From Haliotis rubra (lineage: Eukaryota), in NCBI RefSeq assembly GCF_003918875.1, contig NW_025765548.1:62001-126000 (forward strand): 64,000 nt of DNA, read 5' to 3'. The notes under the pieces were generated by a model that was not told where the DNA came from, searched no databases, and worked only from the letters and a program-made list of their open reading frames with translations. The translations under genes were made by a program, and so were the position numbers. This document shows positions 399-39,900 of the stretch, in pieces. The first letter of the stretch is position 1; every line of letters begins with the position of its first letter.

Positions 399-399
399 T

Positions 400-1017: not shown

Positions 1018-1212
1018 CATAAATCTCCACCTCACAGATGTTCAGTGCATCATCGTGTCCAGGCCCTGCCACCGGGTTCCAGATGGTGACGTATCTGCCG
1101 GTACCGTTACACGTCACGTCAGTTGGGTTGGTGGATGAAGTCGGGAGGGTGGAGCAGATGGCGGAGGCGTCGTTGTTCAGATAGATGTTGGAGTTGACAT
1201 TTCTCCCGTAGT
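1018..1212 (-). CDS. Gene A exon 4 (FTP domain, C-half)
   Basis: GRYVTI...ALNICEVEIY; GTAAGC donor; 195 bp, phase 1-1. Confidence 0.85.
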
Positions 1213-4200
1213 CTTCAGTAAAACAAATACTGTTTCAGATTACGCTACACTATTACACTGTGTTTATATAGTTTCTGTTAACATATTTATCAGATCACAA
1301 AACTATGTTCATGCGATGGACTAATGCATGAGAGGAGAGACTGAGAGGAGACACACCCGATCCAACAATATGTGCTGTCCAGCAGATGCTGTTTAGAATG
1401 ATTACACCAAAACTCGTTTGTTTGCAAATCGTAACGGCACGAAGTTCAAAAATCATCTGAATGTACATGTGCACATGATCACTCTCAATATTTCATTCCT
1501 TCACTGATCAAGACATATGTAATTATAGTCAAGGGTACAAATTCTTAAGTTGTTAATACGTTCTTCTAACAATAAGACCCACTACTGCTGTTATTGAACT
1601 TCCCTTACACCAGACCGCCTCCGTGGTGTAGTGATTTGGGCGTCCGCCCGGAGGGCGGAAGGTCGCGGCTTCGATCCCCGGCCGCGTCTTACTACGAGAC
1701 GTCAAAATATGGTACAATATGCCTGGTGCTCAGCATTAATGGGTACAACAAGAACTGGTCATGTCGGAGTAGGTATAATATGTCTGAGCGGGGTATTCAT
1801 GGTTAACTTTGGCATGGTATATCAGTGAGCCTGCACTATAAACGAGCTTACGTCTGGGCTAGTAGACAAGCAGACACACATACACACGCACCTCACCTCA
1901 CCCATTACAACAGCGGAATGGCCCTGTTTACTTTCAATGTGTAAATAGCTTATAAAACAGAATTGAAATAATAGGCTTGCTAGAAATAAGAACAGGTATC
2001 ACACGTTGAGATATATCAGGTCATGGGGCGTTACTGTAATTGCTATAGTTTGATCATCGGCATATAATGAAAATGTCTCCTCAGATAGAGCAATACCAGT
2101 CTATTGCACCTATCTGTGTTTCCGTCTCTCTTTGTCCGTCACATATTTGTTGTTTAGAACCTTGAGGTGGATTTAATTCTAAGCCGATTCACTGATGTAG
2201 AGTGTTTAAATAGGTTGATAAATATGTTGTCAGCAGAACATGTGTTAAAGAATTACGTAATTGCTTATATGGTGTTGGTTTGTGTTAATTGTTACTTTTT
2301 CATGTTTGAAGTATTATAATGAAAACATAGACTTCAGCAGAGTATCTAAGGTGAGTCTAAGGTGATACATAACAATATAAATAGCATCGTTCTCTCTTGG
2401 ATCACGATGTCTGGATACCTACATCCACGCCTGCTGTAGATCCTGATGTCGTACAGCTGGAAGTCCCGGCCCAGATCCACTGTCCAGTCTGACGGAGATC
2501 CAGCAGCGTGGAAACAGGTTCTACCCTCACCACCAGTGTCACTGTCTCCATCCACAGCATTTGATGGGGCCCAGCCTCCGAACAATCCAGATGTTGTTGA
2601 TGCTGTCTTGTTCAGTGCAATATTTTCTGTGAAGTACAATCATCATGTAACGTTACTGCCCCCTATCTATAGCCTTACGGGTAACAGTCTCCGTACATTT
2701 CAGATGTTGTTGATGCCTCCTTATTCTGTGCAATGTAGGACAATAATCACATCCCCACAAAATTCCATACATATCCCAGTATGTGTTAATGGTGAAAGGT
2801 ATAACATGGGTTTACATGCATGGTGATAGTCTGATTCTAGTTAACAGTATAATGTCAATCACAATCCTGCAACCTATCTGTTGTATTACAAATGTTATAT
2901 ATTGTGTGAGTTAAGGGATCATCATGTAATGATTTGTATCAAAAAGCTGTTTTCACACCGACCAAAGCAGAATATTAAACACATCCAAAATCAGCATTAA
3001 ATATATTAATGGCGCTCACGTTTCTGGCAAAGACCTCCCTCCTTTCTCCATCCCCGATTACAAGAATCAGAACAGGCACCTGTAGTCTCGTCACACGATG
3101 TCCCGCAGTGACAGGAGTAGCTACAGGAGTGTCCAAACCATCCTGGTTCACAGGAACCTGTGGGGAGAAACGGAGAGGTAAGATTCAACACTGAAAGGAG
3201 TAGTTAAAGTCTGCAAACTGACCCAGTGGGATATACGGCAATAGACGTCACATCTGACTGTTTTGATATCTGCATGACCGATTATTCCAAATAAGAAATA
3301 GTTACGCTGAAACTCTTAATCTAATTATCACAGGGAGGTAGTACTGTTCCTGATTGTTCCAGCATTCCGTGTCACCTACATATATAGATTGTCGTCCCAG
3401 TTGTGCACACCTGTAAGACACATATCCACTATGCTATCATGCCTCAATGTCAGACACAGATATCGTTTCTTCCGGTTCCACTGATCCCATCTGATCCCAC
3501 TGATCCTCCACTGATCAAATGATGATCGAGACAGATCCATATCGAAGATAAGGCTGGGTTGGAATCCTTAAGTCGCTCTCCTTACCTATCCTACACTCGG
3601 ACACAACGATACCTTAAGTCGAGGCAAGTATTACGTTTCATTATGTAGTTGAGTATTTTAGGCTTTTAAGGTTGCATGTTTTGTATATCATCCTAAGCAT
3701 TTTATCATCTAACTATCAGATATAGCGAGTCCATGCCAATACCCTCAAAGTTGAACAACAAGGAAGGGAAATAACGTCAAAGTAAACATTACGACCACAT
3801 AACATGTACTAACCCCGCACCATGAATGTGCCTCCTTAATGTGTTCAACTTTTGATAATATATCGAGGAGCTTCAGTGGGATCTGGATGGGAAAGGAGAG
3901 CCAAACTCGCAGCATCCTTTGTATAAGTGAACTTTATCAGTGACTCAAACGATGCAAACTGTTTGTACACGTGACATGGTTTCACAACTTTTGGTTCATC
4001 AAAATGGTAGTTAGAGTAATGTTTTCCTCAAAAACAATTATTCATATCGGGGCGATGGGGTAGCATAGTGGTTAAAACGTTTGCTCGTCACGCTGAAGGC
4101 CCGGGTTCGATTCCCCATATGGGTACAATGTGTGAAGCCCATGTCTTGTGTCCCCCGCCGTGATATTGCTGGAATATTGCTAAAAGCAGCGTAAAACCAT

Positions 4201-7200
4201 TCTCACTCACTCAATTATACATATTATGCTTAGTTCTAGATATTACGGTAATGCTCTATTGCAATTTGTCTGACATAACGGAAATATTGCACTAAATAGT
4301 CAGTGTTATTATCTATCCTCCATGCACAGCACTCCCTCGAGCGGGGCAGTAAGGTTTGCAAATGGACACCAATTGGATAACATGTGTGGACAGCAGCACT
4401 GCGGGTGAATGGGCAGTAGGGCTTTGATGACGGGATAGGAAACATGTTTCATACATGTTCAGATGTATTGGTGAGTGGCATCTGTGTTATAGATGATGAA
4501 ATTGTGCGATTTGAATGAACGGCCCCGGTGCAGGGATGATGTTACGTTGGGTATGGAAATGATATGAGCCTGGGTTAGGGATGACGCCCCGAAACAGACG
4601 AGAACAGGGTACGATTGACAGAGGAGCACTGAGTAGGAAGCACATGATAACATAATAAGAATGATAGGGACTTGGAAATGGTAGGACCTGGATATTAAGA
4701 ACAACAAAACTCCGGACTGTGGCTGTTAGGGGATCCTGGGGTAGAGGTGACATGATCGTAGGGTACAGATAACAGAACGCCAGGATTCGATAGGATTTGG
4801 TTTGTCCTTACAATACATCATACAAATATCGATTTAGACAAACTGAAATCGATTAGGGTTAATGTGGTTTATGCGATTATCGACGGCCGAACAACAGTTG
4901 TGGGATATTTGATAGCGGATGATCAAATCATGTTGAACAATGTTCAGATGCAGGTGATTGGACTCTGTGCTGTGGATGACATGGCCTCAGTATTGATGGT
5001 TTCACCCCTGGGTTTGGAGTAATGTGTTCCGGTCACTTAACCTCGGGTTTTGTATGACCCAGGATGTGTGTGTATATATATACTCAGCAGCAAAAAAACG
5101 TCAGTACGAATTCAAAATTAGATAGGCATTGTAATCAAATCATTACAGAAATGGACATAATAAGCGGATCAAACACAGCTTTTGTGTACACTATCCTGAC
5201 ACATCAATGAATAATTCAGTTCCAAGACATTACGTGAACGTTTGCAGTCCACTCAGACTCTTGACTTCAGTATCTAGTGTGACCACCACGAGCGGCGATA
5301 ACTACAGCACAGCGTCTATGCATGGAGTGCACCAATCGATTGATGAAGGCCATTGGCACCTGGAACCATACTCTGAGATAGGCAATAAATCGGCTGTGTT
5401 CGGCCTTGGTATGACATTATTCCGGTGACGTGCGAAATGTGGTATGACGTGGGGTCGATGTAGCGCACCACTGTGATGCAGCCTCCTCTCCCTGGACCAA
5501 GGTTCTGGAACACCACAGGACCCACTCTCTGGTTCAGGCCTTTTCCACCCCATACCATGATGCTTGCACCTCCCCATGAGTCTCTTTCCATAACACATTG
5601 ATCTGAGTAGCGCTGGCCACGTCGTCACCATATTCTTCTTCTGCCATCTGCAGTTGATAGGCAGTACCGACTCTTATCTGTGAACAGAACAGTTCTCCAT
5701 TGCCTGTATCGCCAGTTTTGGTGTTGTAGGGCAAACTGTAGACGTTCACGCATATGACGAGGGGTAAGGATAGGTCCACGGTAGGGTCTACGCCAATGGA
5801 GGTTCCCGCTGTTAAGAAGTTGGTATACTGTATCAGTACTGATTGGTCTTCCGTGTGTTCCCACTGTCTGGCGTGCTGTTTCGGATCCTGCATGAAGGGA
5901 TTCTGTACATGCTGTCACACAACATGGCGGTCTTGTCGCCTTGTGGTCACCCTTGGTCTGCCAGTACGGGGACGATCATTTGTGGTGTTGGTGGCCCGGA
6001 AACGTTGCTGCAGCCTGTAGATGGTCCGAACGTTGACCATGAAGTGATTGGCAACGGCTTGTGCACTGTGGAATAGCCGGGTCTGAAGCCAGCTTTAGCT
6101 TCTGTTAATATATCATTCAGATCAGTCCATGCACGAAGACGTTTATCTAGGACGGATGTGAATATTTTTCCTGATACATTTATAAGCGATATACCCCTAT
6201 AATTGTTGGGATCAGCTGTAGGTCCTGATTTAAATAATGGTATAATTATTGCAGTATTCCAAGATTCAGGAAATATGCCAGTACTCAATATTGAGTTAAA
6301 CAATGGATTTAGAAAACACAACAATGATGAGTATCCTAACTTGAAGAATTCAGGAGGAATTCCGTCATCTCCGGGAGATTTTCCAATTTTCAACTTCTTG
6401 ATAGCCTCAGTAATTTCTAGATCAGAGATAGGATCAGACAGTAACTGATCTATGCCACTTGAGGATACACAATCATCACAAGAATGTTCAGCTATGAAAT
6501 TATTAACGTGGGAATCAAATGCTTCATCTTCTTTAGGCTTATTAGGATTTAAAAGAGATTTAAAACAGTCAATAAAAACATCAGCTGATATTGGAAAATG
6601 TTCGTTTTTTTTCTTCGAAAGAGCGTTTTAAAATGTTCCAAAATTTCTTGCAATCACCAGATCAAGCAGCCTGGCACAAGTCATCTGCCAACTGTTTTCC
6701 TAGATTTTCCTTTTTCTTAGCACATATTGATTTAAATTTATTTCTAGCTTCCACATATTTTTGCAGATTTTTCTTACAAGTATATCTGCGAAATAAGTTC
6801 AACTTTCTGTATTTATCCTGTTTAAGTTCATCACATTCCCTGTCAAACCAAGCAGGTTGTCTATTATTATTATTTCTTCTTGTAGACACACAGAAACCTC
6901 CCGCTGTACAGGCAGATGAGATAAGAATATCATTAAGTTTATTAACAGCTGCATTGATATCTGACTGTAAAACTGTAAAGAAAATCTTCCAGGATTTTGG
7001 GAGATCTCAAAAGCTCTTTGTAGCTTGATGATGCTGGCTCCGGTAACCGGTATTTCATGACTAGTGTAAGTTTAGTCTCGTTCTCAGACATTGGAGTATT
7101 ACTGAATATTGACGCTACTGTACATGCAACTGGCATATGGTCTGATTCTGTGCGGTCACATATTTCTAAATCCAGAACTTTATGAAAGAGTTGACTTGAA

Positions 7201-10179
7201 ACAAGGAAGTAATCTACAGTACTTGTTCCCGTGTGGGATATAAAAGTGAGTTTACCAGATGAATCAGATTCTGTACGACCATTAACTATATACACATTAA
7301 AGAGCTTACAAAGATCTAGAAGCTGGCTTCCATAGGAATTTACAAGTGTATCACATGAACCTCTGGGCCAACTGAAGGAATCCGACTTATAATCATCAGG
7401 AAGGGGTAGATAATCTGCATTATCATCAATAATGAAATCGACTTGGTTACTGGTTCTTGCATTGAAATCACCACTGAGTATAAACAAAGAAGCGTCACTA
7501 AAATCGTGGTAAATATGTAATAACCTTTTTTTCTAATAAGTCTATTCCATTTACTTCTGCGTCATCGTAGAATGAGGATGTTTCCGGTTGAATATATAAG
7601 AATCCAAGGAAGATATCTTCAGTGGCACATTCATCAACGATCTTAAGAAACACACAGTTTTGCCAGTGATCATATATTCTTCTACACTAAGTCGCTAAAT
7701 GTCGCTTAACACAAACAACCAGTCCACCGGAGTGTCTACCATATTTTGACAATTTTATGGGATCACTGATGAAGCACACATATTCACCAAACGTTAGATT
7801 AATGTTAACTGATTCAATCTGCCATGTCTCTATGAGACAAAATATTTCATATTGTTTGCAAAAGTTTATAAAATCAGGGAAAGTTAGTTTTGAGAGTAGA
7901 CCATGCGCATTCCAAGTACAAATATTTGTTAGGGAATGCTGAAAATTAGAAAGGTCCTTTTGCTCAGTATAGTTGGGGCCTCGACCAAAATCCTATCCAG
8001 TTGATTCAGTTGTATTGCTGGAAGGTTCAGAGCTTCTATTATCCCAATGCCTTTGATGTCCAGTCTTTTTGATGTTGTCATTTACTTCATCATAAACGTA
8101 GGTTGCACCATCGATAATCAGTTTGTCATACTTCATAAATGAAACACAGCCCTCATCTCTTGACTTCTTCATGAATGGGAATAGTTTATGACGGATATTC
8201 CTCACTCTCTCGGTAAAGTCTTCAGCCACACGATATATCTTATTACCTTTCAGTAACTTCTTTGCAGCCATAAAAACTTTATCTTGTGCTTGAAATTAGT
8301 AAATTTGATTATCACTGGCCGATTTCCTGCTTTTGAGTGTAGTCTATGTGCTCTTTCGATTCCAACATCATCTGCCGATTCATATGAAAATTCCTCAGAT
8401 AAAAAATGTCGTACCTTTGTTTCGGTTTCTTCCCATGTTTCACCTCTTTTATCATTTAAACCGTGTATAATCAAGTTGTTCCGCCTTGATTGAGCTTCCA
8501 AAGAGTCCACTTTCCGATCGCAATTGGTTTGCTTGGAGCTGGCCAGTCTCAACGTGCAGTTGCCCGACGCATGGATGTTCACCAAACCATGGCTCTGGGA
8601 GAGATATCGCCGGCAGAATGCGTTAGCAGATGCCCCTCGTAGTTGGTGACCTCGAGCGACCACTGCGGCGCGGGATCCCTACATCCGGGTACATCACCTG
8701 CGTCATCGAACAGCTACGGCGACCAGTACCGCTCGACAAATACCCGGATTGAGGAGGCTTTCTGCACAGACCATCAGGAACAGGTTGAGAGAAGCTGGTT
8801 TACGTGCCAGAAGACCTTATTTTGTCCATGTGCTTCGACAACAACATCGTGGACATCGAGTTCAATGGCGCACAACGTTCAGGGCCCCGTTCCTCAAAGC
8901 GATCGTAGCGCTACGACAGTCGTAACTCCCATACTTTAACATAGACTTACTACTGTCGAAGCGCTACGATCGCTTTGAGGAACGGGGCCCAGGCCTGGAA
9001 CCTACCGAATTGGTGTAGAATCTGGTTCAGTGATGAATCACGATTTCTATTGGAGCGACGCGATGGAAGAATGCGGGTGTACAGACGTTGACGTGAACGT
9101 TTCACCGACGCTTGCGTTCCCAAGTGGGCAGATTCGGCCGGGGCGGTGTTATGCTGTGGGGAGTGATCACCTGCCGTAGGAGAAGTGATTTTGGTGATGG
9201 TACTGTGACGAAATCCTACGCCCACACCTCCTTCCAATCATTGATCGCCAGAGGGAGTTGTTTCAACAGGACAATGCCAGGCCCCACACAGCACTTCACA
9301 CTAGAGACTACCTCCAGAACCACAACATCAATGTACTCCCCTGGCCCTCAAGATCACCGGACTTAAACCCGATCGAACATCTGTGGGATGCCCTGGACAG
9401 ACGGGTGCGACGCCGTAACCCTCAGCACAAGACACTTCAGCAACTCGCACAGGCACTACAGGCAGAGTGGGCTGCGATTGGGCAACACGAGATTCATAGA
9501 CGTATTCGTTCGATACCGAGGCGATGCCGTGCAGTCTGGATGCCCACGGTGGTCACAAGAGGTATTGACTTCAGCGCCACCACACGTCTCCATGGGACAC
9601 TCAAACTGACTTTCCTCGAGTTGGTGCCAAAAACGGATAAGTCTGCATTCCCAGTGTGCAATTTCGCTATATTTCATTGACTCATAAAGCCTACAAGATG
9701 TTTCAAAATAAACATAAAAATGCCGTTGAAATTCATATATGCGTTTCTTTTTTGGGAGAGTATATATGACGAACCAACAGCCCTTTACTTCCTTGTATAA
9801 TATATAGAGGTTTGTAAGTTGGTAGAATGCAAGGATGAATCTTTATTGCCGTGAGGTCAATTGTTTTTAAAGTATAGTATCCTCGTGAAGACGATTCATA
9901 CAGTCTCATCGGATAGTACATGTAGACCCTTCACTTTATTGGTATTATCCCGTGAGCTGATATTCACAATCAAATAGTGGACGCCTGCATATAACACTCT
10001 CTAAAGAAATTTTGTTCAACGTTAATATGACATTCTCGTTTCGAAGAAAACAATAGCTTACTTGCAGTGATGTACACATTCTCGAGGAAGGCATGAAAAC
10101 TTCGGCTGATGTACTCACCCGATGTTAGCTGTATCCATCGAAGTAAGACAACCGCTACGAATATCCTGACACCCGCCAT
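1018..10179 (-). CDS. Gene A, 5' part (continues off the left edge): EGF + F-type lectin (FTP) receptor, paralog of gene B, probably an EGF/lectin receptor-type PTP
   Basis: Four phase-1 GT-AG exons in frame without stops. 10119-10179: MAGVRIFVAVVLLRWIQLTS, signal peptide. 3020-3157: EGF, SCEPGWFGHSCSYSCHCGTSCDETTGACSDSCNRGW. 2423-2626: NIALNKTAST...NAVDG...CFH...WTVDLG...IRIYSR. 1018-1212: ...VTCNGTGRYVTIW...ALNICEVEIY. The first three exon sizes (61/138/204) equal those of gene B. Confidence 0.85.
1614..1890 (+). mobile_element. tRNA-derived SINE
   Basis: Box A-like GGTGTAGTG and box B-like TTCGATCCC head, followed by a non-tRNA body and a CA-rich tail. Confidence 0.6.
2423..2626 (-). CDS. 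Gene A exon 3 (FTP/fucolectin domain, N-half)
   Basis: NIALNK...AVDG...CFH...WTVDLG...IYSR motifs; CAG acceptor, GTAGGT donor. Confidence 0.9.
3020..3157 (-). CDS. Gene A exon 2 (EGF-like repeat)
   Basis: CAG acceptor, GTGAG donor, Cys-rich MEGF-type repeat. Confidence 0.9.
3485..3892. mobile_element. Putative MITE
   Basis: Imperfect terminal inverted repeat TCCCATCTGATCCCACTGATCCTC / GAGGAGCTTCAGTGGGATCTGGATGGGA. Confidence 0.45.
4049..4213 (+). mobile_element. tRNA-derived SINE family A (about 160 bp, TCAC tail)
   Basis: GGGGTAGCATAGTGGTTAA..GGTTCGATTCCCC head; multiple copies in window; imperfect TSD CAATTAT. Confidence 0.85.
5083..6067 (-). mobile_element. Tc1-like DNA transposon relic, 5'-truncated
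   Basis: Frameshifted transposase fragments DRPRTGRPRVTTRRQDR, WRTVLFTDKSRY, GGASIMVWGG; TA-flanked terminus at 5083. Confidence 0.85.
6068..8520 (-). mobile_element. Non-LTR retrotransposon fragment (ORF1 C-terminus, APE, RT N-terminus), truncated at both ends
   Basis: LEAQSRRNNLIIHGL..IERAHR (ORF1); GDFNAR, TVDYF, SDHMP (APE); KSPGDDGIP, NYRGISL, AGFRPGYST (RT). Confidence 0.9.
8521..9760 (+). mobile_element. Tc1-like DNA transposon relic, 5'-truncated
   Basis: WFSDESRF, GGVMLWG, FQQDNARPH, WPSRSPDLNPIEHLW (DD34E); TA-flanked end at 9760. Confidence 0.9.
8883..8989. mobile_element. Palindromic MITE with CAG TSD (PIF/Harbinger-like)
   Basis: 30-bp perfect TIR GGCCCCGTTCCTCAAAGCGATCGTAGCGCT flanked by CAG..CAG, inserted in the Tc1. 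Confidence 0.8.
10119..10179 (-). CDS. Gene A exon 1 (signal peptide)
   Basis: ATG at 10179, hydrophobic MAGVRIFVAVVLLRWIQLTS, GTGAGT donor; near-identical to 44106-44166. Confidence 0.85.
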
Positions 10180-10191
10180 GTTAAGCAACGC

Positions 10192-10201
10192 GGAAGTGAA
10201 A
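10192..10201. promoter_or_regulatory. ETS-IRF composite-like motif GGAAGTGAAA just upstream of the gene A ATG
   Basis: Matches GGAAnnGAAA; conserved at 44179-44188 in gene B. Confidence 0.35.
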
Positions 10202-17420: not shown

Positions 17421-19385
17421 CAAGCACCGACAAATACATTGAATAAAATATTTATGCTACAACGTAGCAGCACTAGGCTTTCGTCATACGATGTTTTAAT
17501 TTTGGAACCTGTCAAATTCGACATTCATTCGGACGGGCGGAGTTTAGTTACCTAATTACTTGCATTGGACTCTTCTTGAAAACACCAAGTGATCAGATCC
17601 TGTGATTTGAAAGAAGAGGTAAATACACTGAAAAAACATTCTTCACCCCTTTTTTTCTTGTGCCTTTATAACAAACATCGATTAGATACATTATAGAACA
17701 TCTTCACCAATGTTTATGTTTTACTATTTCTTCCTTATCCCTTTTATAGTATTATTTTCATATATAATATAAAAGCTTTCTTTTTTCTTTCCATCTTACT
17801 GGATAGAATAGATTGATATTACTGTCCACACTATGTGACGTTATAATAAACAACAATGACAATGAATTGAGAGTTTCTTTATTCACAATTTGGCGGTCAT
17901 ACAGTGTCAGTATTATTTATCACAATTGGGCCCACACACAGACAAACCACAGTTAATAGTTAAATGTTGGAAACAACCAACACTGGTTTTGATAAGATTT
18001 TCTCTACCTTGACTTGGGCGTAGTTTCAATTCAATGCAATCATATTCATACGAATACGAGAAAGTGAATAGCAGTATTTACATAGGTGCACATACACCTG
18101 AAGATATGTTTTTTTACAATTTGGACAGGTCAACAGAAGGGGATAATATTCCGATAAAAAGAAGAAAGTCTTATGAAAAGCACCGGTAATTGAAATGTAC
18201 ACAAATATACAGTCAGTATATGCAGAGACAATGATAATGACCTTTGCAGTAACGTAAAGTTCACTAAAGCCGGCCTAAAGTGACTATATATGGATTACAT
18301 AATCATTATCTGAATGACACATCGCACACAGCGCCACCAAACTTGATGACATCATATTAAGATGTATTGACACATGTTTAATGACACGTCATTTTACCAG
18401 GTTAAGAAGGGGTCATTGCTACGAGATGCAATAACATAAGACAGCAAACCTGTGGAGTTTTTTTCTTGACTTACACCTCTTGCCCCCTTATATTTTGTTT
18501 TGTCAATTGTGAGTTTGATATGTCACATTCTCTCAAACTAGTTTTTAAAATAAGTGCTAATCTAGTTGTCACTTTGTCCTTTGACGACATAATTGTACAT
18601 TTATGAAATGTATTTGCCAACTGTATTGCTGAAATATTGCGATGTGACGATAAATGTTAACTCACTCACTCATTGGGGGAAAGACGTATTGGCTGCCAAT
18701 CACAGAAAAACTTCCATGTCAAATATGTGTAAGCGTGTATCGATAGTAGCATGCTTTGCTGAAAGAAAAACAGAATAGGCCTTTTCAAATAGTGTGACAT
18801 CATCATGTCACAATCAGTCTAGAAAAAAAGTTTGAATGAAAAACAAATGTAAACAACTTAGTAGTTTTGTCAGGCTTTTTTCTTGCTTTTGAGAAAACTT
18901 TGTTTTAATTCCGTATACCTTAGTATGGATCTATAGCCCGTTCTTATATTGTACTGTTGTCTCTCGTGATATATTTTATGATAGCGTACTAGTTTTAAAT
19001 TAAGAGCTGTGATATTCTAGTAGTTTTATTGTCCTTCGATAACCGGTTTTTACGTTATACATATATTGATTTGAATATTGATAGCAACTGTTCTCGTCAC
19101 GATACGGCTGCAATATTGCCGATGAGACGTTAAAATGTAACTCACTCACACATAAAACTGTTTCACCAAGTCTCTCGTGCAATTGGTACACAAAGTCGAA
19201 CACTGAAAAGTCATGTTCATTGTCATAACGAGACTGCTGCGTCATTATATTGCAGTCATGTTTGGTCTATTAGCAAAATCCTTGTCCAACTGCATTAGTG
19301 ATATTGCTCATAATACACAATGCGCAGAGAAATCAGGTACAATATTGAAATGATATTGCACAATGCTACCATGAATGACAATGCT

Positions 19386-21679
19386 TTACAGGTTAGCATA
19401 GAGTCCAAGAGATTCCAGTCGTCCTTGTGCAAACTCCAGACACCGGCGAACATCCTCCTGAAAGTGAAACAAAACACGTCAGAACTGTAGACCCAAGGCA
19501 CACTGTACTTAATATGGTGTCTCGCTGTCTCGAGCATGCATTAGCATGGAGAGATATTTCTTAGCATTACTCAAACCCGACTGTAAAATACTAATCTACA
19601 CTAACCTATATCCTACCTGAGAGAATGGAGGTACACCGAGAGTTGAGTGTAGGCGTCGCATGTTGCTGATAACGTCCACCCTGCTGTCGTCCTGCAGTCT
19701 GCTGGCGATGTTCACCAAAAGGACCAAGAACCGTGCCTCGCTCACAGAGCTGCAGTGAACAATAAGTCATGTACCCACTCATTTGTAATAACCCCCACAA
19801 TTATAATGATTACGACAGCGGTTTTACAATCACTACAATATTTTCTTTTGATGTCTTTATAAATCAGATCGACTTACAAAACAGTAAGATATTTAGTAAG
19901 CTGTAACTACCAGGAATCATTGTTTACTGATATTGTGTTTGACTGTGCCACATGTCTGCTCATGTAATGTGGCTTTACATAGTTCAGTATTTGTGACCTC
20001 ACACGATGGAGAAAGGAAATGGGTCACCAAGAAGCGACTATTTTTTTAAACGGCTTCGTTCCAATACATATTATGGAGTTTTCAAAACTCTGACCTGAAA
20101 TCTTTCATCTTTCAGATACATGGTAGATAAATTTTCATGTGTAGAGCTTCTGAGACAAGTATATATTTTACATGTCAATCACAAAGAGCTATTGTTTTGG
20201 TTTCACTGAATAATTTTGTTCGTACAGAAATGAACTGATGTAAACACAATATTTTTACTGAGACATGATTGTGCAGGAACATCTCTGTGGGTCACTCATC
20301 CATGTAAGGAAGCTGTCAATCAACAGACTGACACTTGGATCATGTGTACTTCCGGTCACATGATAGTGTTGAATTGTTGTGGTGACGTCAGCATCCTGAA
20401 AGACAGTTTTCCTTCTTTACAAACAATACGGATAGTTAAACTGAAATACATATAGTAATACGATGTGTTGGTGATATATTTTTGATGCCAGGAAGTTCCC
20501 TAATATTTAGATGTTTGATTGGCATTTTAGAATATGCTATTTGATGAACAAAGATAATTTTCTGGGTTTCATATTCTTTTTATTGTTTGGTATAACGTTT
20601 CAGGGCTTGTTCTGGCCCGATCAGTTCTACCTGTTGATGGGACCAGAACAAGCCCTGAAACGTTGTCCCAAACAATAAAAAGAAGATGCAACCCAGAAAA
20701 TTCTCTATGTTCCCAATATTTATTTTAGAAAATCTGCAAAGAGGAAAATACCCTGGAAGTCGAGTGATACCACAATGTTTGGTCGAGGGACATCAGAAGG
20801 GCATTGATTGTGTTTTGAACAGAGCAAGCCCAGTACTATATTACTCTCACACTGTTTGACCTTGGATAATGGTTATGACTGTCAAACGCATTTTGCATTC
20901 ATTACATCCCTTGTAAAACCGTGAAGGTCCGGGTTAGAATATTGATCTTCAGTAGCCCATGATTGTCGTCAGAGGTGATTAACAGGATCGGGTGGTCAAG
21001 CTCGCTGACTTGGTTGACACATGTTATCGGTTCCCAATTGCGCAGATTGATGCTCATGCTGTTGATAACTGGTTTGTCTGGCCCAAACTCGATTATTAGA
21101 GACCGCCGCCATATAGCTGGAATATTGCTGAGTGCGGTGTAAAACTAAACTCACTCACTCACATCCCTTCTCAATGAAATGTAAGCGTGAATTGTAACAT
21201 ATCTGTCATAAGCTTTACATTTACTGTGAGATCAATAGAGTTCAGGATAACATCATTAGATATAACTTTAGATGTTTGCAGGCTTGCTGTCAGCCTTGAT
21301 GTGGAGACAGGACTGTCCATCGACGGAAGGAAGATCTGCAAGCCAGAAAGTGTTAACTTCAGGGATTTTTTTCCTTTTCAGGATTGTCAATATTTGCGAG
21401 TGCATTTTGGATCGTATAATTAATGACCACCGATATTCGACTATTTAAGAACGAAAAAAGAAGATAGTGTTAAATAGACAACAACATGTCATCTTTATCA
21501 ACAAAGCAATAGTTTTCCGAAATATTTTATAACTATTCCTACCTGGTTTTCTACAGCCAACGTGATCAATGTGTGCGAATCGCTGTTATACATCTGATTC
21601 CATAGTTCCTCCTTGTCTGGTTGTGACGTCGTTATGAAGAAGCCCTTCCTTGATGTGAAGGACTGCAGTGAGATATAAC
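19386..21679 (-). CDS. Gene B degenerate PTP D2 domain exons and terminal exon
   Basis: Five phase-compatible exons (137/117/137/133/72 bp): SFTSRKGFFITT..LWNQM; ...TIMSH|SVSEARFL..RVDVISNMRRL; EDVRRCLEFAQGRLESLGLYANL*. Confidence 0.75.
20556..20702. repeat. Long inverted repeat, Penelope-like palindromic remnant
   Basis: Arms of about 65 bp; contains CTGTTGA..GAAACGTTG..AATAAA. Confidence 0.6.
20917..21162 (+). mobile_element. SINE-like family B (about 250 bp, TCAC tail)
   Basis: Copies at 36304-36525, 58703-58902 (-), 61665-61876; TSD ACATCCCTT. Confidence 0.8.
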
Positions 21680-23820: not shown

Positions 23821-23862
23821 GACTGCGGCCCGGCTCTGATTGACAGCGAAATTGACATTGAA

Positions 23863-27327: not shown

Positions 27328-27450
27328 AAGAGACATGTATATATATACCTATGTATATGTTGAAACCATATTGTCTATATATCATATACCACTTTGCATT
27401 TATTGTACACGGGCCAATGTCCCCTATATACCGAAATAAATTCTTCTTCT

Positions 27451-28068: not shown

Positions 28069-28118
<50 letters not shown>

Positions 28119-30197: not shown

Positions 30198-31504
30198 CTT
30201 ATATTCTTCTTCTGTACTTGATGGAGTCATTTCTTCCACCTTTTTTGTGTAATTCTGACACAGGAATCACGTGATCCCGTCCCTTGTCGTCCAGGTTGTA
30301 GTAGTTTCTGTCAGGGCCCTCTGGTTTGTCCTCAACCTGTGCAGGCTGCTCAGATACGTCATAATCCTCTTCCTCCTCCACTTTCTGAAGGTCAAGGTCA
30401 GCTGTTCCGCCTTTACCCGTATCCTTGCTTCCAGTTGTAGATACAGCTTCCCCTGTTGAATTGCCTTCGGATTCGGTCTGCCTATGAGCCTTCATTTGTT
30501 TAGCTGATGTCTTCTCTGGAGACAACGTTGGTTTCTCGTCGTTATCAAATCCGATATTCATGTACATGCCAATGTCTTCCGCTACAGGAAACAAAAAAAG
30601 GACATTTCCAAAAAGGACAAAAAATAAGATCCATGACATAATGTCGTTATCATATATAGAAGTAGGGATGATCTGTACAGAAGTTACGTGATCTCTAAGA
30701 AGCAGATCCATGTGAGAGTCAAGGTACGTCATGCAGTAGTACTATTGAGTATTGTTATAAGAGTGTGTCTTTTTTTGTAATTTGTAAAATCATTGATTAG
30801 GTGATAGTTATTATGGGTCACAATGTTTAAAGTTTTGAGTATATCTGCTCTAACTGTAAATGTGAATGTCAAGGTGAGTTGATGTCTTATATTTGTGACC
30901 CAATACTTTAGATTTGTGACTCAACTGCATTGTACTAGAAATCTGTATTGTGATTCATTGTAGCTTGCTCATTGTTTGTTCAATATATTATTGAATATTT
31001 TAGACTTGTCTGTGTTTTATTTTGCTTGTTCAAGGGGGACTTTTAAACCTTTTGTCACGGCAATTTATTAACCGTAACAGTATACACGATCACTTACGTA
31101 TGCTACAGCCTCTATATATTACACCAGTCCAAATATTCTTGCATAAATTAAGCAAACGAGAGAGACGAATCTACCTTGTGTCGTTTTCACGTTATCAGGA
31201 AACACTGTCTTGTGTGCAGAGCGTCCATGACTTTCCCCCCGTCTTCTTCTAAATGTAAGGACACAAATTGAAATACAGTTTGCATAGAGCAAGGGCTCGT
31301 CAATTTGTAATAAGTATGTACTGATTCATTGCCTTTGAAGACATTACAGGGATTAGAATGTATGTAAAAAAACTGACCTGATCATGATGACTGCAAGGAC
31401 CAGCAGCAGTATCACCACCACGACGACTACAGCTCCCACTACAGCAGCGACTGGAAAAGAGGCGGCTTCAGGCTGCTGACTTGGGGTATGTGTGGCAACT
31501 TTCC
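30198..31504 (-). CDS. Gene B transmembrane and juxtamembrane exons
   Basis: 31378-31504 encodes VAAVVGAVVVVVVILLLVLAVIMI followed by RRRR; the cytoplasmic exon carries YMNI, YDV and YYNL tyrosine motifs. Confidence 0.85.
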
Positions 31505-31643
31505 CTGGATGTAGAATGGAGAAGATTAAAAAATGTTAGCATAGAAGTGCACACGTCTTTCATCACATAAAGCGTGCTTAGTGAAATAATCTTTGTCATT
31601 TTAGAAGCCTCTGTATCAAAAGCATGATGTCACACCAACATTA

Positions 31644-31815
31644 GTGAGTGAGTGAGTGAGTTATAATTTATCCTCACATCGGCAATATTTCAGCCATATC
31701 TTGACGAGAACGATTAATTTTATACATAGTAATTATTGGTAAATTGTAAAAACCTGTCAACGAAGGACAGAAAAAATAACTAGATTAACACAGATTCGAA
31801 TTAAAAACTAGAACT
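31644..31815 (-). mobile_element. Family C retroposon 3' fragment
   Basis: (GTGA)n tail plus the shared ATATTTCAGCCAT segment; flanking duplication TCACACCAACATTA. Confidence 0.75.
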
Positions 31816-32439
31816 TAGATCTATCACACCAACATTAAATCTGTCATAAATTGAAAGAAAATGTCCTTCTTCATCAGATTACCGTTGTTAGAATTAACAT
31901 GTGCATGAACAAGTCACTTGCATATTCTTCTTTACAACCACTGTAGAAACATGAATTCGTGTTATGCGTGATGGTATGCTCACACACTCTACGCTGGCTT
32001 TAACAGTCAAACCTTTACTCAGATACATGGCGAGACCATGTTTGGGCAGAAATGACACATGTAGAGTGTTCCATTTCGTTTACATGATTATTTATTTCCG
32101 TGAATAGGTCTGTGTGTACGACTTCGTATAGGCAGTTGAACGTGTCCTACATTGCCGTGCTCTGACCATTTGTTGAAAGTCTGAAGTCTGACATGAATTG
32201 ATTGTTTTAACCTGTGTCCCATCCGCTGCTTCCCATCCTTAATGCATTACATGGACTTTAGCATTAACCATCAGTCACATCACAGTCATTACCCTGTTAC
32301 AAAAACAGTAACACACTCTCGGGACTAGCTCCTCTCCCGTTATAGCAGTAGCTTATGTAGAGTCAACTTATCTCCCCCGTCTCCGATCCATTGTAACCTG
32401 CTTGTTGCTTTGCACCCCACATCGACATCTCGTTCTTAC

Positions 32440-35026
32440 CTGTACAGTCATCCCCTGTCCAGCCTGCTTCACATCCACCAACACAGATCCCTGTTGCGTT
32501 ACAGGAAGAGTTCTTCATACAGTGTCTGGAGCTGCAACTCATGTTGCACTTGTTCCCATAATGTTGGGAATCACATTCTGGAATAAGATGATTAAACAAT
32601 TCATATTTCATTTCATGTGTTATTCATTACCTATCAATCATCACATTCATGAAGCGACACATACAAACCTGAGTACATTGAATTTTTCCGTCTTGATGCC
32701 ATGATCCATTAGATTTGGTAACTTTATCTGATATTCTGCAGTCATTCCAAGGTTGTGTAACATTGCTCAATTCTTGATTTTAATGTTCTGATGATTTAAA
32801 GTGACACACAACTAGCTTCGGAATCTTAATGCCCAAAGTCTTTGCGATCAGTACTTGCATATTACAGATAAACAATTTATCGAGTGTTGTTTTGCCGACC
32901 TCAGTCAGGCCTACAATGTAACAATATCAATCAATATTATCTGTGTGATGTTCTTCCTTCCTCAACAAATTAAATTATGACTAGGCTATAAATTTAAAAT
33001 TCATTGTAGCATTTCCTTTTCACATTGGCATGTTTGCTTTTTATTCTTACAATATACGTTGACATCGTATCCAGTTTCTCTTCAGACAAAGCAAAAGTAA
33101 GTTTGTCACTATCACAGATGTTTCTTCATGTTTCGCATGGCCTGTACATTCTATGACTGACTGACTGACCCGCTCTTAGCAATATTCCATGTGGGGATTC
33201 GAACCCGGGTCTTCGGCGTGACGAGCCAACGCTTTAACCGCTAGGCTACCCCACCGCCCCGTACATATTATGAAAGTTATGATTGTGGAAGGTGTCTCTC
33301 ATCTCTCACAGTGGCTTCAACCAGTCATATTTATTGTCACCCACGTTAGTGAACCTCATTGGTGGCATTACCTGTACAATCAGGATACATCCACCCTGTC
33401 AGACATCCACTGTCACAGGTCCCTGTTGAGTTACAGGAAGAGTTACCATCACAGTTTCTGGAGGAGCATATCTTAAGACAGTTGGATCCATAATGTTTGG
33501 AATCACATTCTGAAATATGATACCGATGATTTAATGGCGGCTTTTGTATGTGTAAGGAACATTGTTCATAAGAGAGTTGAAAGATCTTTAGATTAGGTTT
33601 ATTTCATATGCACTTACCAATAATTCATTTCCAAGACTCACCTTCTTTACAATCGACACCCACCCATCCAGCTTTACATCCAGAATCACATGACCCAGTC
33701 ACATGATCACATGATGAATTTCCCGCGCAGTGTCTGTCAGAGCAAAGACTAGTACAGTTTGCGCCGTACTTTCCACTGGAACATTCTGTAACAACGAAAT
33801 GGAGAGCTTACATCGTGTTTTATAGTTGCATGTGAATATACAGGCTTTCTTAATAACTGATGTATTTTTTTTCGACCAAAAGGTGTATTTAAAGGCAAAG
33901 TACAGAAAAATATCACATACAAATAGGTACGCTATGACATAAGATAAATTGGATATAACATTTTCATTAATTATTATCGAGATATCTGTATGTTAATGAC
34001 AACGTATATTTTTCACCTCTTGTGCATCGAGCCAAATTCGACAAGCTTGTACACTTTTGCTTTTACTCACATAAACCATCATGTTAGCCTAGAGAGCTAC
34101 CAGAATTTTATTCGTAATAGACTTTTGCAATATATGTGGCTTTTTCATGTTTCAAAGTCGTTTAGTTATGATGATATAATGTGTTCACTCGCATCAATGC
34201 TGATGTATTTTCCTTCCAAGTTATAATTGTTGCAATCGGACAGCCTCCTTTCTCTCCCTTCCACGTAACTTGATCTTTCATTATCATTAAACTGTCAACA
34301 TTCTTTACCTTGTGTGCAGTTAACCTCCATCCACCCAGAAAGACATCCTGTGTCACATGCTCCAGTGTGACGGTCACATGACGAATTTGAAGCTGACACT
34401 TCCGCCCAGCACATATCTCGTTGCAGTTAATGCCATAGGTAGTGCTGTTGCAAGCTGTAAAATATGGACAAGCATCAAGTTCATAAAGTTGAGAAACATT
34501 TGAGTAAAGCTTCCCGGGTAATCGTGTCAGCAAACTGTATGAAACAAGTATATATGTGAGGTCGATCACCACTTAACATGTCCCTACAAACGAGCCCACA
34601 GTATGACGTCCACAAAGCTCGAATCCTGTTATTCTTTTGCACTTCTTCAAAATGTTCTATGACTGTTAAAACACGATTCACTGTGTATATATATTGTGTA
34701 CATACTGTGAATATGTGAAAGCGCCAGGGAACAGTCAAACTGGAACCTTCCTCTCTATACAAAATGACTAGATTAGATTAGACGATTAATGATTAACCTA
34801 AGGACACAGTCAACATGCCTTGTATGCCTTGGCCTGTACAGTCTCCAGTACCACTGACAGGTGCCTATCAATGCTGATAGTACAAACGTCTTACCTGTAT
34901 CACATCTCTGTCCCTGCCACCCTGATCTACAGTCTCCAGGACACAATCCAGTCCACCGATCACAGGTTGAATCCAGGCAGTGACAGAACTTATCACAGTT
35001 CACCCCGTAGACACCTTCACTGCAGA
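32440..35026 (-). CDS. Gene B MEGF-type EGF repeat exons (5)
   Basis: Phase-1 exons of 132-146 bp, e.g. [17 protein letters not shown]..., [11 protein letters not shown]..., [11 protein letters not shown]...; 34309-34454 is 1 nt short. Confidence 0.9.
33155..33260 (-). mobile_element. SINE family A copy (internally deleted)
   Basis: tRNA-like head in reverse orientation. Confidence 0.8.
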
Positions 35027-35301
35027 CTAGTGCATAACAAGACGAGTGTTTATATAAGAGTACTAACTTGTAGCCATGAATATTTGGAATTTGTGTGAAC
35101 ATCGAATTGATGAACGGCCGACATTATTATATTTACCTATCAGTGATAGCTGCAGCTTTTGGCATCTTACGATGGTTGATAGAAATAGAAAATGTGCTGT
35201 TACATTTACATCGCATAATTTTCAACATTTCCCAACCGTAATACCAACAAATGCAACATAGTCAAATATAAACTGGTCCCCTCAATACACTGCCATTTGT
35301 C

Positions 35302-35600
35302 GGTCCATGCAGGAAGCAAATGTACTGTAAGTCCCCATGGTCCCTAGTATGGTGATCTACCTTCAGTTGTTGGCAATATATAGCCGGTTTTTACCTTGAA
35401 TTGTCCTATAGTTAGACTGTTTTAGATTTGATTGCTAGTTTTAAATTCGAATCTGTGATAATCTAGTTATTTTACTGTCCTTCGTTGACAGGTTTTTATA
35501 GTTGCCCTTGCTTATTATGCATAAAATTAATTGTTCTCGTCACGATATGGCTGAAATATTGCCGATGTGACGTTAAATTTTAACTCACTCACTCACTCAC
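35302..35600 (+). mobile_element. Family C retroposon (5'-truncated LINE 3' end or SINE) with TCAC tail
   Basis: Clean TSD CACTGCCATTTGTC; copies at 47255-47515 and 40258-40512 (-). Confidence 0.8.
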
Positions 35601-36303
35601 ACTGCCATTTGTCAAGTATTTTGTGGGAGGGAATCTGAAAACAATATTTTTTATAAGCAATACGACATTTGACGCGCTGATGCTCAAGAAACATTTGGAT
35701 ATTTCTTAGCCTTAAAGCTATAGTCTAAATCTGTTACCAAAAGGGTCGCGCTCTGAGATCAAGTGTATCTGCCTTCGGTCCAATGTTACCATTGTAGACC
35801 AGAACCAGATTGTGAGTTCCATAGCAAAGTCCATAGATAATTACATGTAACATTACAGGTTAGAAATGGAGTCATTTCTTTCTTTGTGGCAATGCAAATG
35901 TGCATTTAGTCGAAGTAAGAGAATTTCCCCAGAGAACATTAACCAGTCTAATCTTCTGACAAAACATACTCCACTGAGCGTAAAACGTTAATTGACAAGT
36001 TCAGAACACTTACTATAGCACTGTGTAGCTCAGTAATGGCATCATGTATTAGCGGAAGGGGTAAGCATTTCCTGCCCTACCGAAGGCACCTATCTATCTG
36101 TTGTGAATGATGTGGCTGGTGACTAACAAAACAGTGAAGCAGTTGGTTGAATCTATCGGACAACTTGCACAATTGTTCAGTTATAACAACTGCAGTTCAT
36201 TTCATATGATACAGCTTCCAAAACACTGACACAAAAATCTGGCACAAACTCCAACAAAAATTGGACATTTGCTGTGTATATTCCATACAATATGACATTT
36301 TCG

Positions 36304-36525
36304 ACCCGTGAAGATCCGGTTAGAATTGGTCTTCAGTAACCCATGCTTGTTGCAAGAGGCGACTAACGGGAACGGGTGGTCAGGCTCAATGACTTGGTTG
36401 ACACATGTCATTGTATCCCAATAGCGTAGATCCATTCTCATGACTTTGGTCACTGGATTGTCTGGTACAGACCGCTGCCCAATAGCTTGAATATTGCTGA
36501 GTGAGGTGTAAAACACCAACAAAAA
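36304..36525 (+). mobile_element. SINE-like family B copy
   Basis: Homologous to 20917-21162. Confidence 0.8.
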
Positions 36526-36908
36526 TTAAACCAAACAAGATGTTTTCAAAAATTCCTAATGCAGATTACTTAATAAGCCTTCCCCCCGTCAGGCACAAGA
36601 AGCATGAACTTGCTTAAAGAAATATTATTGCATTATTGCAAATAAATTTTGCATCTCGTTAGATATGAATGCATTGTCGACTAGAAAAGACCGAGCTTCA
36701 AATACCCACTTATAGATAGATGAATACATCCAATCAATACTTTCACAATGTGTTTGATGAAGCTTCTCAAATATTGAGACAAAGATCAGGGTCATACAAA
36801 GCCTTCTTAGCTCTACGACATTCGTAAGCTAATGATGAACTGTAAAGTTACGAAAGGTTACACATGATTTAAGGATAATACACATACTTAATACAATAAA
36901 GGACTTAC

Positions 36909-39900
36909 CATAGATCTCCACCTCACATATGTTCAGTGCACTAGCATAGCCATCACTTCCTCCATCCCCCCGGGTTCTTGATGGTGACGTTTCTGCCGGT
37001 ACCGTTACATGCCACGTCAGTTGGGTTGAGAGTATTTGGTGGACTCGGGAGGGTGGAGCACATGGCGGAGGTGTCGTTGTTCAGGTAGATGTTAGAATCG
37101 GCGTTTCTATAGTAGACTGGAAAACAAAGATGTTTTATTCTACGTTACATAATAATACTTTGTCAATATAGTTGCTGTTAGCTCATATTTCAGATCACAA
37201 ACCTATGTTCATGTAATGGAATAATACCGTAATTGAGAGAAGACACGTCCAATTAAAAGTATATGCTTTACAGCGGATGGGGATTAGAATACTCACTTCA
37301 AAACTCCCGATCGTTTGCAAAAAAATAACAGTTCACTGATGGTCAATATTCTTCTGGCACATATTATGTACCAAATCCCTTTTAAATTTGCGATTTCTGC
37401 ACTGAAACAGATATATTTATTGTACCCAGCAGTAAACGTCCTGATTCTCAAATGTATTAATAGTATTACGTTAATCACTAAACCCTCCGTAACTCAGTAA
37501 CTCATATGTGTGTGTTTGCAATAAGTATCAGGCACAACCAAGACACAACCATATTATATGAAGGGAAGCAATTTAACTACTGGAATAAAGTAACTGTGCA
37601 TCATTTGATGTTATGCCATTTTAATGCAAAAAATAGTACTATGATCTGTGATGTTTTCCTGAATAACCATTTAACTGTTGACAGACTATCGAAATGTGTA
37701 TGATTTGACACTAAGCATCGTGACACGCCCTCGAAGAGATGTGGTGTCAAATGACTGTTCACAAATGCAGCATTGTGTGTGTCCACCATCGGTGTTGATG
37801 CAGGCTTGACAACGACGACGCATAGACGAAACTAAGCGATTAAAGAAAGCTTGGAGAATGTTGTTCCATGTCTGAACCCGCTTGTTCCAATTCAGCTAAC
37901 GTCAGAGACCCAATGATCTCATCCCTGTATCGCAGACCTGTCATATTGCCATTGACAAGTTGTGTGCGACCATGAGATGCGTTACCACCAATATCATAAC
38001 GCTTTCGCACAAAAACTCGAAGTCGAAAGTCGCATGCGTCAACATACCGTTCATCTCGCCGTCCGTACACCCTTGCCCTGCCATCTGAGCTTCCCAGATG
38101 AAATCTCAACTCGTCAGTGAACAAAACACAATATCAATCTCCTGTACTGTGAGATGCTGTCTGTACCTGGCAAGACGCGCATGTCGGTGACGCTGGAGCA
38201 AAATTGGACGTATCGCAGGCCGCCGGGGTAGGATGTTATGGTCTCTCAGTCGGTACTTCAGGCCTGGACCTGATTGGACGTAAGCCAGGAATGGTCTAAG
38301 CAGACAAAATGGCTGTCTGGAATCGATTCAGGTCAGCCGAATATGGTTGTTTTGCTGACGTGAGAATACGTGTGCATCTCTCCTGTTCCCATTATGTTGA
38401 AAACGTCTCTATATAGCATACCCACGGCGCGGAGACGCTGATTTTCTGTAAGCCGTGACGTGACGTACGCGCAGTTTAGGTTGCAATTAACGAGTTTTCC
38501 AAAGCATTCAGAGGCTGTAGAATAATCAACCGGCGTTCAATTTTCAACTTTTCAAAAGTGAGTAAGCTCATTGTGCACAAAGTGCACGTGCCACATGACG
38601 CATTACATTGGCATCACATTTCATGCAAAGTGCTTTGCTACATGTTTATTTAGGGTTATTTCATAATTTTTCAAATAACTTTATCTTATGCAATTTTATG
38701 TTATGCACAGTTATTTTTTCCCGTTAGTATATATGTATGTATACCACAACTCCAATAAATAATCACGGTATAGAATCTACAAAGCAGGCTTAACACATAC
38801 TGTCTGGTCCTGATACAGCATAGTTACCAACCCAAAGTGATAACCTATATTTATTCCATTCATGTCTTGTTTGGTACACTTGATAATATTATCGACTGTA
38901 AGTAGGCTAAATGTAAGAACTACTATTGCTGGTATTGAAATTAGCTTAAATCAGCGGAATGGCCCTGGATTTTGTAGAGGATGTAAATTAATCTTGAAAC
39001 TGTATAGCGATAATAGGATTGATTTAAATGCGTTTGCATAACACTCGTTCATGTATATTAGATGATGGTGCCCCACCGTTATAACCAAAAATGCCATATT
39101 TTGTAGTTGGTGACAGAGTAATACAAACCTAATGCATATTTACGTCCTTCTGTTACCCAGTATTCAATTGTTATATACACCTCGAGACGGAATTGTTTTG
39201 GAGCCAATTCATTGATGTGGAACGTTTAATATGTTGATATAAATGGTATATATAAAGCATCTGACATCTGCCCCAGTAGGTGAACTGGGGTGTAGGTGAA
39301 ATGTGTGTGTAGGGGTTATGGGTGTAAACCGTATGAAATACTAGAAGTGAGCAGATACAGATAAGTGGAGATATCACTCGTTGAGGTATATTAGGTGATG
39401 GGGTGGTACTGTTTTGCTTTGGTTTCATCACAAGTGTATAATGAAAATATGCCTCGTCAGATAGAGCAATATCAGCCTGTTGTTAATATCTGTGTTAGAT
39501 CATGTTTCCTGGATACCTACATCCACCTCTACTGTAGATCCTGATGTCATACAGCTGGAAGTCCCGGCCAAGATCCACTGTCCAGTCTGACGGAGATCCA
39601 CCAGCGTGGAAACAGGTTCTTCCCTCACCACCAGTGTCACTGTCTCCATCCACAGCATTTGATGCGGGCCACCCTACGTACGCTTCAGGTGTTGTTGATG
39701 TTGTCTTGCTCAGTGCAATGTTTCCTATGTGGTTCAAGAATCATGCCATACACATGCATCCATATAGACCCCAGTACGTGCAAATACTGAAAAGGTTCAC
39801 AGGGTTTACATGTATGGTGACAGTCGGATTCAAGTTGATGGTGTAATGACAACCACAACTCGACAACATATCTATTAATGTTATATACGGTGTGAGTTAA

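Follow-up and report, generated by a model that had tools for sequence, protein, structure and literature searches.

Variable loops on a conserved F-type lectin scaffold in two tandem receptor genes of the abalone Haliotis rubra

F-type lectins of the eel occur as isoforms in which the scaffold is conserved and variability is found in the loops of the binding cleft, with the first complementarity-determining-like region (CDR1) being the most variable (PMC5712786). Streptococcal F-lectin domains also vary in their cleft loops, and the F-lectin of oyster bindin combines positive selection clustered on the binding face with recombination (PMC5712786). In the gastropod Biomphalaria sudanica, SudRes1 is a cluster of paralogous receptor tyrosine phosphatases that combine a galactose-binding-like domain with MEGF repeats; marked extracellular diversity, gene presence or absence, a proposed role in pathogen recognition, and a tie to schistosome resistance are described for it (PMC12297450). 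The present analysis concerns a stretch of 64,000 nucleotides from the abalone Haliotis rubra (the window; assembly GCA_003918875.1), which carries two copies, A and B, of an F-type lectin domain. Each copy is encoded by an N-half and a C-half exon, and both copies lie on the minus strand.

A and B belong to a family of abalone receptors. They share a scaffold that is nearly constant and differ in a small number of loops. It is fairly probable that these receptors have kept their fold constant while the loops around the sugar-binding pocket were diversified by selection and by exchange between tandem paralogs. The evidence for this reading comes from the comparison of A with B, from codon models over a wider set of abalone copies, and from conflicts between the trees of the two lectin exons.

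Lectin fold, pocket, and variable loops

On the N-half exons, Pfam returned a borderline F5/8 type C match alone. A representative search with the A N-half exon found 361 relatives. A region search on the H. rubra protein P0007 (XP_046562318.1) found 12 abalone proteins from H. rubra, H. rufescens, H. asinina, and H. cracherodii, with domains that are 64–84% identical, and most of these are long receptors with the tyrosine-phosphatase domain PF00102. A profile of 42 domains matched FBP32 (3CQO) at 3e-95 and eel agglutinin (1K12) at 2e-40. The same profile also matched lectinolysin and SpX (3LE0 and 2J1R) at about 1e-30. Even a single abalone domain matched the C-domain of FBP32 (3CQO) at 3e-12. 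The AlphaFold model of P0153:64-206 had a predicted local distance difference test score of 91.3, and the top 11 Foldseek matches to it were all F-type lectins, with 1K12 at a template modeling score of 0.81. This is a genuine F-type lectin domain, with a beta-jellyroll fold.

The residue alignment to 1K12 agrees with the published numbering (PMC5712786). Equivalents of the pocket triad His52/Arg79/Arg86 are present in A, B, and 12 of the 13 copies used at the codon level, and alignment A1 shows little or no variation at either pocket Arg. The AVDGD calcium motif (h2DGx) and all four Cys of the two structural disulfides (equivalents of Cys50-Cys146 and Cys108-Cys124) are conserved. The published F-lectin formula is HX24RXDX4(R/K) (PMC5712786); the eel numbering of His52 and Arg79 implies 26 residues between them, which matches the HX26 of the earlier note on this DNA. 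That note had described the abalone motif as non-canonical, H-x25-R-x5-R without Asp, which is correct for both A (RRGYYGR) and B (RGGFYYR). Neither Asp nor Glu occupies the position of the acidic residue that forms a salt bridge with the first Arg, and the full motif is absent. Comparable deviations occur in accepted F-type lectin domains (PMC5712786). Furthermore, the vicinal Cys82-Cys83 disulfide, a contact of the fucose ring, is replaced by aromatics (Y-Y, F-Y), neither the eel CDR2 aromatic pair Phe45/Tyr46 nor the aromatic 5-methyl pocket is conserved in abalone, and abalone CDR1 is four residues shorter than eel CDR1. In H. asinina S3 (P0162 and P0163, two receptor paralogs; L009:19955-26084), Val replaces the pocket His (CFVAGG), and the sugar binding of these proteins may have been lost or changed.

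The N-half scaffolds of A and B had been called near-identical, and the comparison bears this out: over the 45 residues of SNAVDG...IRIYSR, a single difference (A/G) was found. Three short segments had been named as sharply different. The first, SGLFGGWAP in A and PEAYVGWPA in B, is present as quoted, and so is the second, RRGYYGR in A and RGGFYYR in B, where both versions cross the intron and were joined correctly. For the third segment, WNPVAGPGHDDAL is present in A; KNPGDGGSDGYASAL of B is also present, but not in a single frame as assembled. A third variant of this segment, KSQGTGGHDGCASAL, does occur at 404-294 on the minus strand, but the element there (fragment C) covers just the final ~37 codons of such an exon, a C-half one. 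All three variable segments are real, but they hold just 19 of the 34 columns that differ between A and B. A fourth cluster of differences, TSS--T in A and SPPNTL in B, lies in a further loop and had been overlooked. With the loops fixed beforehand from the DSSP assignment of the structure model, 26 of 59 loop columns differed between A and B, compared with 8 of 77 columns elsewhere (Fisher odds ratio 6.8, p 8e-6).

The introns of A and B are 74–77% identical. In the scaffold, the synonymous rate (dS) between the two copies was 0.25, the nonsynonymous rate (dN) was 0.04, and their ratio (omega) was 0.17. In the three segments, dN was 0.54, dS was 0.34, and omega was 1.6. The scaffold dS is near the intron divergence, which together with the omega of 0.17 indicates that the scaffold is kept by purifying selection and not by recent homogenization of A and B. 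Gene conversion as the cause of the near-identical scaffold was ruled out for this reason.

The loops were mapped by means of the 1K12 residue alignment, the DSSP assignment of the model, and the published contact residues and CDR names (PMC5712786). All three segments of the earlier note fall in loops of the model. In the alignment to 1K12, the first corresponds to CDR1 of eel agglutinin (Leu23-Glu32) and the second to the core of CDR4 (Gly80-Glu85, between Arg79 and Arg86), whereas the third is the loop directly preceding the last strand. Cys146 in the last strand is disulfide-bonded to Cys50, two residues ahead of His52, and takes part in binding the calcium that gives CDR1 and CDR2 their shape (PMC5712786). 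By topology, the third segment would therefore lie on the pocket face. Together, alignment and model would place the variable loops around the pocket. The top loops are the length-variable ones in the F-lectin fold (PMC5712786), and the abalone loop indels fit this published length variability. By the earlier note, variable segments lying away from the pocket, or a loop dN/dS no higher than that of the framework, would have spoken against its interpretation; neither was found.

Selection, recombination, and competing explanations

Selection was examined in 13 complete lectin coding sequences from four Haliotis species (loci L002-L009), all in frame and with conserved splice sites. GY94 codon models were run in our own code on an IQ-TREE topology. 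Omega for the whole domain was 0.60 under M0. The scaffold had an omega of 0.25–0.36. In the comparison of M1a with M2a, the likelihood-ratio test (LRT) statistic for the whole domain was 87, with 16% of sites at an omega of ~4. When each exon was analyzed on its own tree, the LRT was 38 for the N-half and 28 for the C-half. The N-half exon is free of gaps, so its result is independent of the loop alignment. Sixteen of the 17 high-posterior M2a sites were located in top loops, with high-posterior columns at 14-17 and 19 (CDR1), 31 and 34 (CDR2), 41 (CDR3), 67 and 70 (CDR4), 93, and 118-125 (last loop). The lone site outside the top loops was column 83, in a bottom loop.

Rates were also compared between regions. 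With separate synonymous rates, omega was 0.84 in the top loops and 0.36 in the scaffold (p 8e-5). With a shared synonymous rate, CDR1 and the last loop reached 2.7 and 1.8, respectively. Sixteen codons homologous to eel contacts in CDR1-4, which were chosen from the literature and not by their variability, had an omega of 2.3 with a local synonymous rate (p 0.0015). The diversifying selection that had been proposed for the loops is thus supported by the A/B ratios (1.6 against 0.17), by the contact codons, and by the site models.

Recombination among the copies, the other process that had been proposed, was also detected. The pairwise homoplasy index (PHI) was 0.502 against 0.548 +/- 0.012 with permuted site orders, and 0 of 2000 permutations reached the observed value (p<0.0005). 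In addition, the two exons give discordant trees: the N-half tree places H. asinina S3 and S5 as sister copies, whereas the C-half groups S5 with S2 and S3 with S4. The CDR4, L6 loop, last loop, and C-half scaffold of A are closest to H. asinina S4 and H. rufescens R2, which have a short last loop. The last loop of B is closest to H. asinina S1 (85%, long type). CDR1 of A and CDR1 of B had no close relative among the sampled copies. The C-half exons of A and B belong to separate lineages that predate the split of the Haliotis species. These affinities and the conflict of the exon trees indicate that the C-half contrast between A and B is mostly an old lineage difference that was juxtaposed by exchange, and not change after duplication.

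These findings can be combined in the following model. A and B are tandem members of a multigene family of abalone type-I membrane receptors, built from a signal peptide, an EGF domain, the F-type lectin domain, EGF repeats, a transmembrane segment, and either a tyrosine-phosphatase or a short tail. Purifying selection keeps the scaffold, the calcium site, the two disulfides, and the His/Arg/Arg pocket nearly constant. The loops surrounding the pocket (CDR1, CDR2, CDR3, CDR4, and the last loop) would be diversified in two ways. First, selection would favor amino-acid replacements at positions homologous to ligand contacts. Second, paralogs would exchange exons or short tracts, by which A would have come to carry a short-type and B a long-type C-half exon, both types being older than the species split. 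The outcome would be a set of receptors with a single fold and differing fine glycan specificities. Family membership, fold, loop assignment by alignment, the rate contrast, and recombination are shown by the results above. Three further points are presumed: contact between the variable loops and the ligand, a fucose-like glycan as that ligand, and a role of the diversity in recognizing microbes or other non-self. The altered sugar specificity suggested by the earlier note could at present only be surmised.

Several points weigh against this model. The omega of 0.84 for the whole top loops, with their own synonymous rate, does not differ from 1 (p 0.19). Loop synonymous rates are about twice those of the scaffold, so converted tracts, multi-nucleotide changes, or relaxed constraint may contribute to the signal. 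The M2a tests are inflated by recombination; imported tracts fit the elevated synonymous change in the loops, and standard site tests therefore overstate selection. Branch lengths were held at their M0 values in our GY94 code, and the sample comprises 13 copies, whereas perhaps 10-20 exist per genome. In the stretch before gene A begins, no B match to the catalytic-Cys phosphatase exons was found, and a long interspersed nuclear element (LINE) lies there; B may be decaying. Lastly, with the aromatic pocket, Asp81, and Cys82-Cys83 absent, fucose binding is not assured.

Some of these points are shared by an alternative in which relaxed constraint is the only cause. Surface loops would then drift at an omega of ~1, B would be a decaying pseudogene, the contrast between A and B would stem from purifying selection acting on the scaffold, and no adaptive diversification of the loops would have taken place. 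This alternative is possible but rather unlikely. It would account for the top-loop ratio near 1, but not for the literature-chosen contact codons, which exceed that value with local dS, nor for the preference for M2a in each exon separately. The same pattern recurs in 13 intact copies from four species. The state of B is compatible with decay in that its phosphatase exons have no match in the region occupied by the LINE, its last loop contains a frame break as assembled, and RefSeq has no full model of it. However, its scaffold is still constrained relative to A, the break is absent from a contig of one public sequencing run, and B-type 5' exons are spliced in another, RNA-type run.

Contigs from public runs were placed on window positions 36700-41100. 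In the assembly, B reads CCC-GGGGGG, which is one G extra, and the in-frame reading ends at TGA. The sole run X1 contig over the break (156 nt, otherwise identical) has one letter fewer at 36966, so that five G remain and the reading is in frame. This deletion is absent from run X2, which carries a different organism label. The frame break of B is probably a homopolymer or assembly error, or else a polymorphism, and the five-G form was used in the codon analyses. The classification of B as a plain pseudogene from the frame break alone is weakened by the in-frame contig. Moreover, an RNA-type contig of run X6 joins 40111-40011 straight to 39723-39641, showing that B-type 5' exons are spliced.

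Another alternative keeps the F-lectin fold without sugar binding, with loops that serve protein-protein recognition or are coated with N-glycans. It is improbable. Asp81, Cys82-Cys83, and Phe45/Tyr46 are missing, CDR1 is shortened, Val occupies the position of the pocket His in P0162 and P0163, and proteins of the same fold bind lipids or have other roles elsewhere (PMC5712786). Nevertheless, A, B, and most copies still have the triad together with the calcium motif and both disulfides. The C-domain of FBP32, which likewise has R-x5-R and no Cys-Cys pair, with Phe220 where abalone has F or Y, binds fucose (PMC5712786).

It is quite doubtful that the partial exon copies near A act as silent loop cassettes, which would serve as donors by gene conversion or be spliced in. 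One of them bears a CDR1 just upstream of the N-half exon, and another bears a last loop just downstream of the C-half exon. As modeled by RefSeq, the XP_046562318.1 join from an internal GT of the A C-half exon to an AG in fragment C would swap the last loop. If true, this would be a germline-encoded cassette system that varies a lectin paratope. An artifact of long-read indel errors or misjoined exons is very unlikely and largely refuted: despite the suspect homopolymer in B, the frame break in a neighboring copy (D, described below), and four indels in a C-half exon on contig QXJH01002198.1, no other loop segment is out of frame and splice sites are conserved across the 13 copies, which come from four independent assemblies, short-read contigs match the B exons, and the same variable segments occur in RefSeq proteins of four species.

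Gene architecture and neighboring copies

The window belongs to contig QXJH01001590.1, on which three family copies lie in tandem, and its positions 1-54166 correspond exactly, in reverse, to locus L002. The window is eukaryotic, has ~39% G+C, and contains zero runs of N. Each of the four lectin exons of A and B is bounded by an AG acceptor and a GT donor, and the junctions are all phase 1. In each copy, the lectin exons are followed by EGF, transmembrane, and tyrosine-phosphatase exons, which for A lie mostly past the window start. The features of the window are listed in Table 1.

Table 1. Features of the two lectin copies and of associated elements, in window coordinates.
Feature	Position	Strand	Basis
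Copy A N-half exon, F-type lectin domain; contains CDR1 (2591-2565), AVDGD calcium motif, CDR2, pocket His, CDR3, start of CDR4	2423..2626	-	Translation, splice sites; Pfam PF00754, 28.6 bits
Copy A C-half exon; remainder of CDR4, variable TSST loop, short-type last loop (~1081-1046)	1018..1212	-	
Copy B N-half exon; CDR1 at 39689-39663	39521..39724	-	Translation, splice sites, spliced run X6 contig
Copy B C-half exon; long-type last loop (~36979-36937)	36909..37116	-	Translation, splice sites
Copy A EGF-like exon, immediately 5' of the lectin domain	3015..3155	-	tblastn with P0002 and P0007
Copy B EGF-like exon, 5' of the lectin domain	40013..40147	-	tblastn; spliced run X6 contig
Six-G run breaking the B reading frame within the last loop as assembled	36966..36971	-	Assembly sequence; run X1 contig
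Degenerate tandem duplicate of the 5' part of the A N-half exon	2665..2756	-	Self-alignment, pairwise alignment
Fragment C, 3' third of a C-half exon with long-type last loop; 5' part missing	294..404	-	GT donor retained
Dispersed repeat adjoining fragment C	396..561	.	Self-blastn
Copies of the ~165-bp repeat	4049-4216, 46061-46231, 49903-50076, 58170-58342, 60563-60731	both	

The degenerate duplicate beside the A N-half exon carries a third version of CDR1, TSEMYGDCYP; its acceptor is lost and it has a 2-nt deletion. On the 5' side of fragment C, stop codons are found together with the dispersed repeat, which cuts the exon off. Fragment C also carries V>G in the nearly invariant CEVEIY motif, and its identity is 81% with B and asiS1 and 70% with A. 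By self-blastn, further copies of the repeat adjoining fragment C are found near 18989-19152, 31644-31823, 35423-35600, 40256-40511, and 47264-47515. The second dispersed repeat family, with units of ~165 bp, has five copies of 78-86% identity on both strands.

Neither gene is modeled cleanly in RefSeq. XP_046562318.1 (L002:10001-76682, from window position 44166 to past the window start) is a chimera that skips ~37 kb. It begins with the signal peptide, EGF exon, and N-half exon of B, continues into the A C-half exon as far as ..TIWNP, passes into fragment C, and ends with the downstream exons of A. Fragment C is entered as coding sequence via the internal GT in the A C-half exon and an AG inside the fragment.

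Additional copies were found beyond these two genes. A third tandem copy, D (XP_046562317.1, annotated MEGF10), lies past the window start at L002:79656-80681, and its N-half exon is interrupted by a 1-nt frame break. It carries the Asn/Thr-rich NNTTNTTTTN in place of CDR4 and the following strand, and it has a short tail and no phosphatase. A second B-like locus is located on contig QXJH01002198.1 (L001:5540-8400), with introns 92-94% identical to those of B and an N-half exon that is 100% identical. Its C-half exon has four indels (-1, -1, -2, -2), and the RefSeq models end after the N-half (156 and 167 aa). This locus could represent a haplotig, or else a duplicate that arose recently and has decayed. 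In run X6, an RNA-type contig with a loose end at 39528 runs from the N-half core into ..K-FYFRNANS, which is the spliced C-half of another paralog with a further CDR4 version. DNA word depth at 39493-39639, the scaffold part of the B N-half exon, exceeded the depth of the flanks 10-20 times in three runs, which suggests roughly 10-20 near-identical copies of the N-half exon core per genome.

Partial lectin-exon ends also stand beside working exons at other loci. H. asinina has two N-half fragments upstream of S3 (L009:19250-19337 and 19771-19811), and the second B-like locus has a 43-nt C-half 3' fragment (L001:8700-8742). These partial copies are traces left by repeated local duplication or by exchange that was imprecise.

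Comparison with known systems

Among the closest described systems are the eel F-lectins (Anguilla anguilla agglutinin, 1K12; A. japonica eFL-1 to eFL-7), with which the abalone domain shares the fold and the His/Arg/Arg pocket. The eel lectins are soluble single-domain serum proteins, whereas the abalone domain is part of a membrane receptor. In addition, eel CDR4, with Asp81 and Cys82-Cys83, is strictly conserved, whereas abalone CDR4 is variable and lacks both features, alongside the shorter CDR1.

The C-domain of FBP32 from striped bass (3CQO) is the best single-sequence match. Like the abalone domains, it has R-x5-R and no vicinal Cys-Cys, and its Phe220 stands where abalone has F or Y. 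In contrast to the abalone receptors, FBP32 is a soluble tandem lectin that retains an acidic residue beside the first Arg and an aromatic residue of the CDR2 pocket.

Among molluscs, Pacific oyster bindin provides an F-lectin that, as proposed for abalone, was diversified by selection and recombination. Oyster bindin is a secreted acrosomal protein of gamete recognition encoded by a single-copy gene, with alleles, repeat number, and splicing as the sources of its diversity. The abalone diversity lies between tandem receptor paralogs instead. In architecture, the abalone genes resemble SudRes1, a gastropod paralog cluster with a galactose-binding-like domain, EGF repeats, and a phosphatase tail: EGF exons stand on both sides of the lectin exons, family proteins carry PF00102, and three copies lie in tandem. 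The abalone receptors are thus candidates for the same type. In the part of the SudRes1 paper drawn on here, the domain is named merely galactose-binding-like and its variation is not mapped to lectin loops (PMC12297450). F-type lectin identity with a hypervariable paratope for the galactose-binding-like module of such receptors would direct experiments to specific residues. It would also give a testable picture of mollusc receptor variation, in which a rigid lectin scaffold carries five or six variable loops that change by selection and by the shuffling of tandem genes.

The abalone case is a further instance of a known pattern of loop diversification and introduces no new principle. What is specific to abalone is the membrane-receptor context, the variable CDR4 without Cys-Cys, and the exon-level mosaicism. 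For lectin biology, it places a membrane-receptor case, in which CDR4 is variable, aromatic-rich, and without Asp and Cys-Cys, beside those of eel and oyster.

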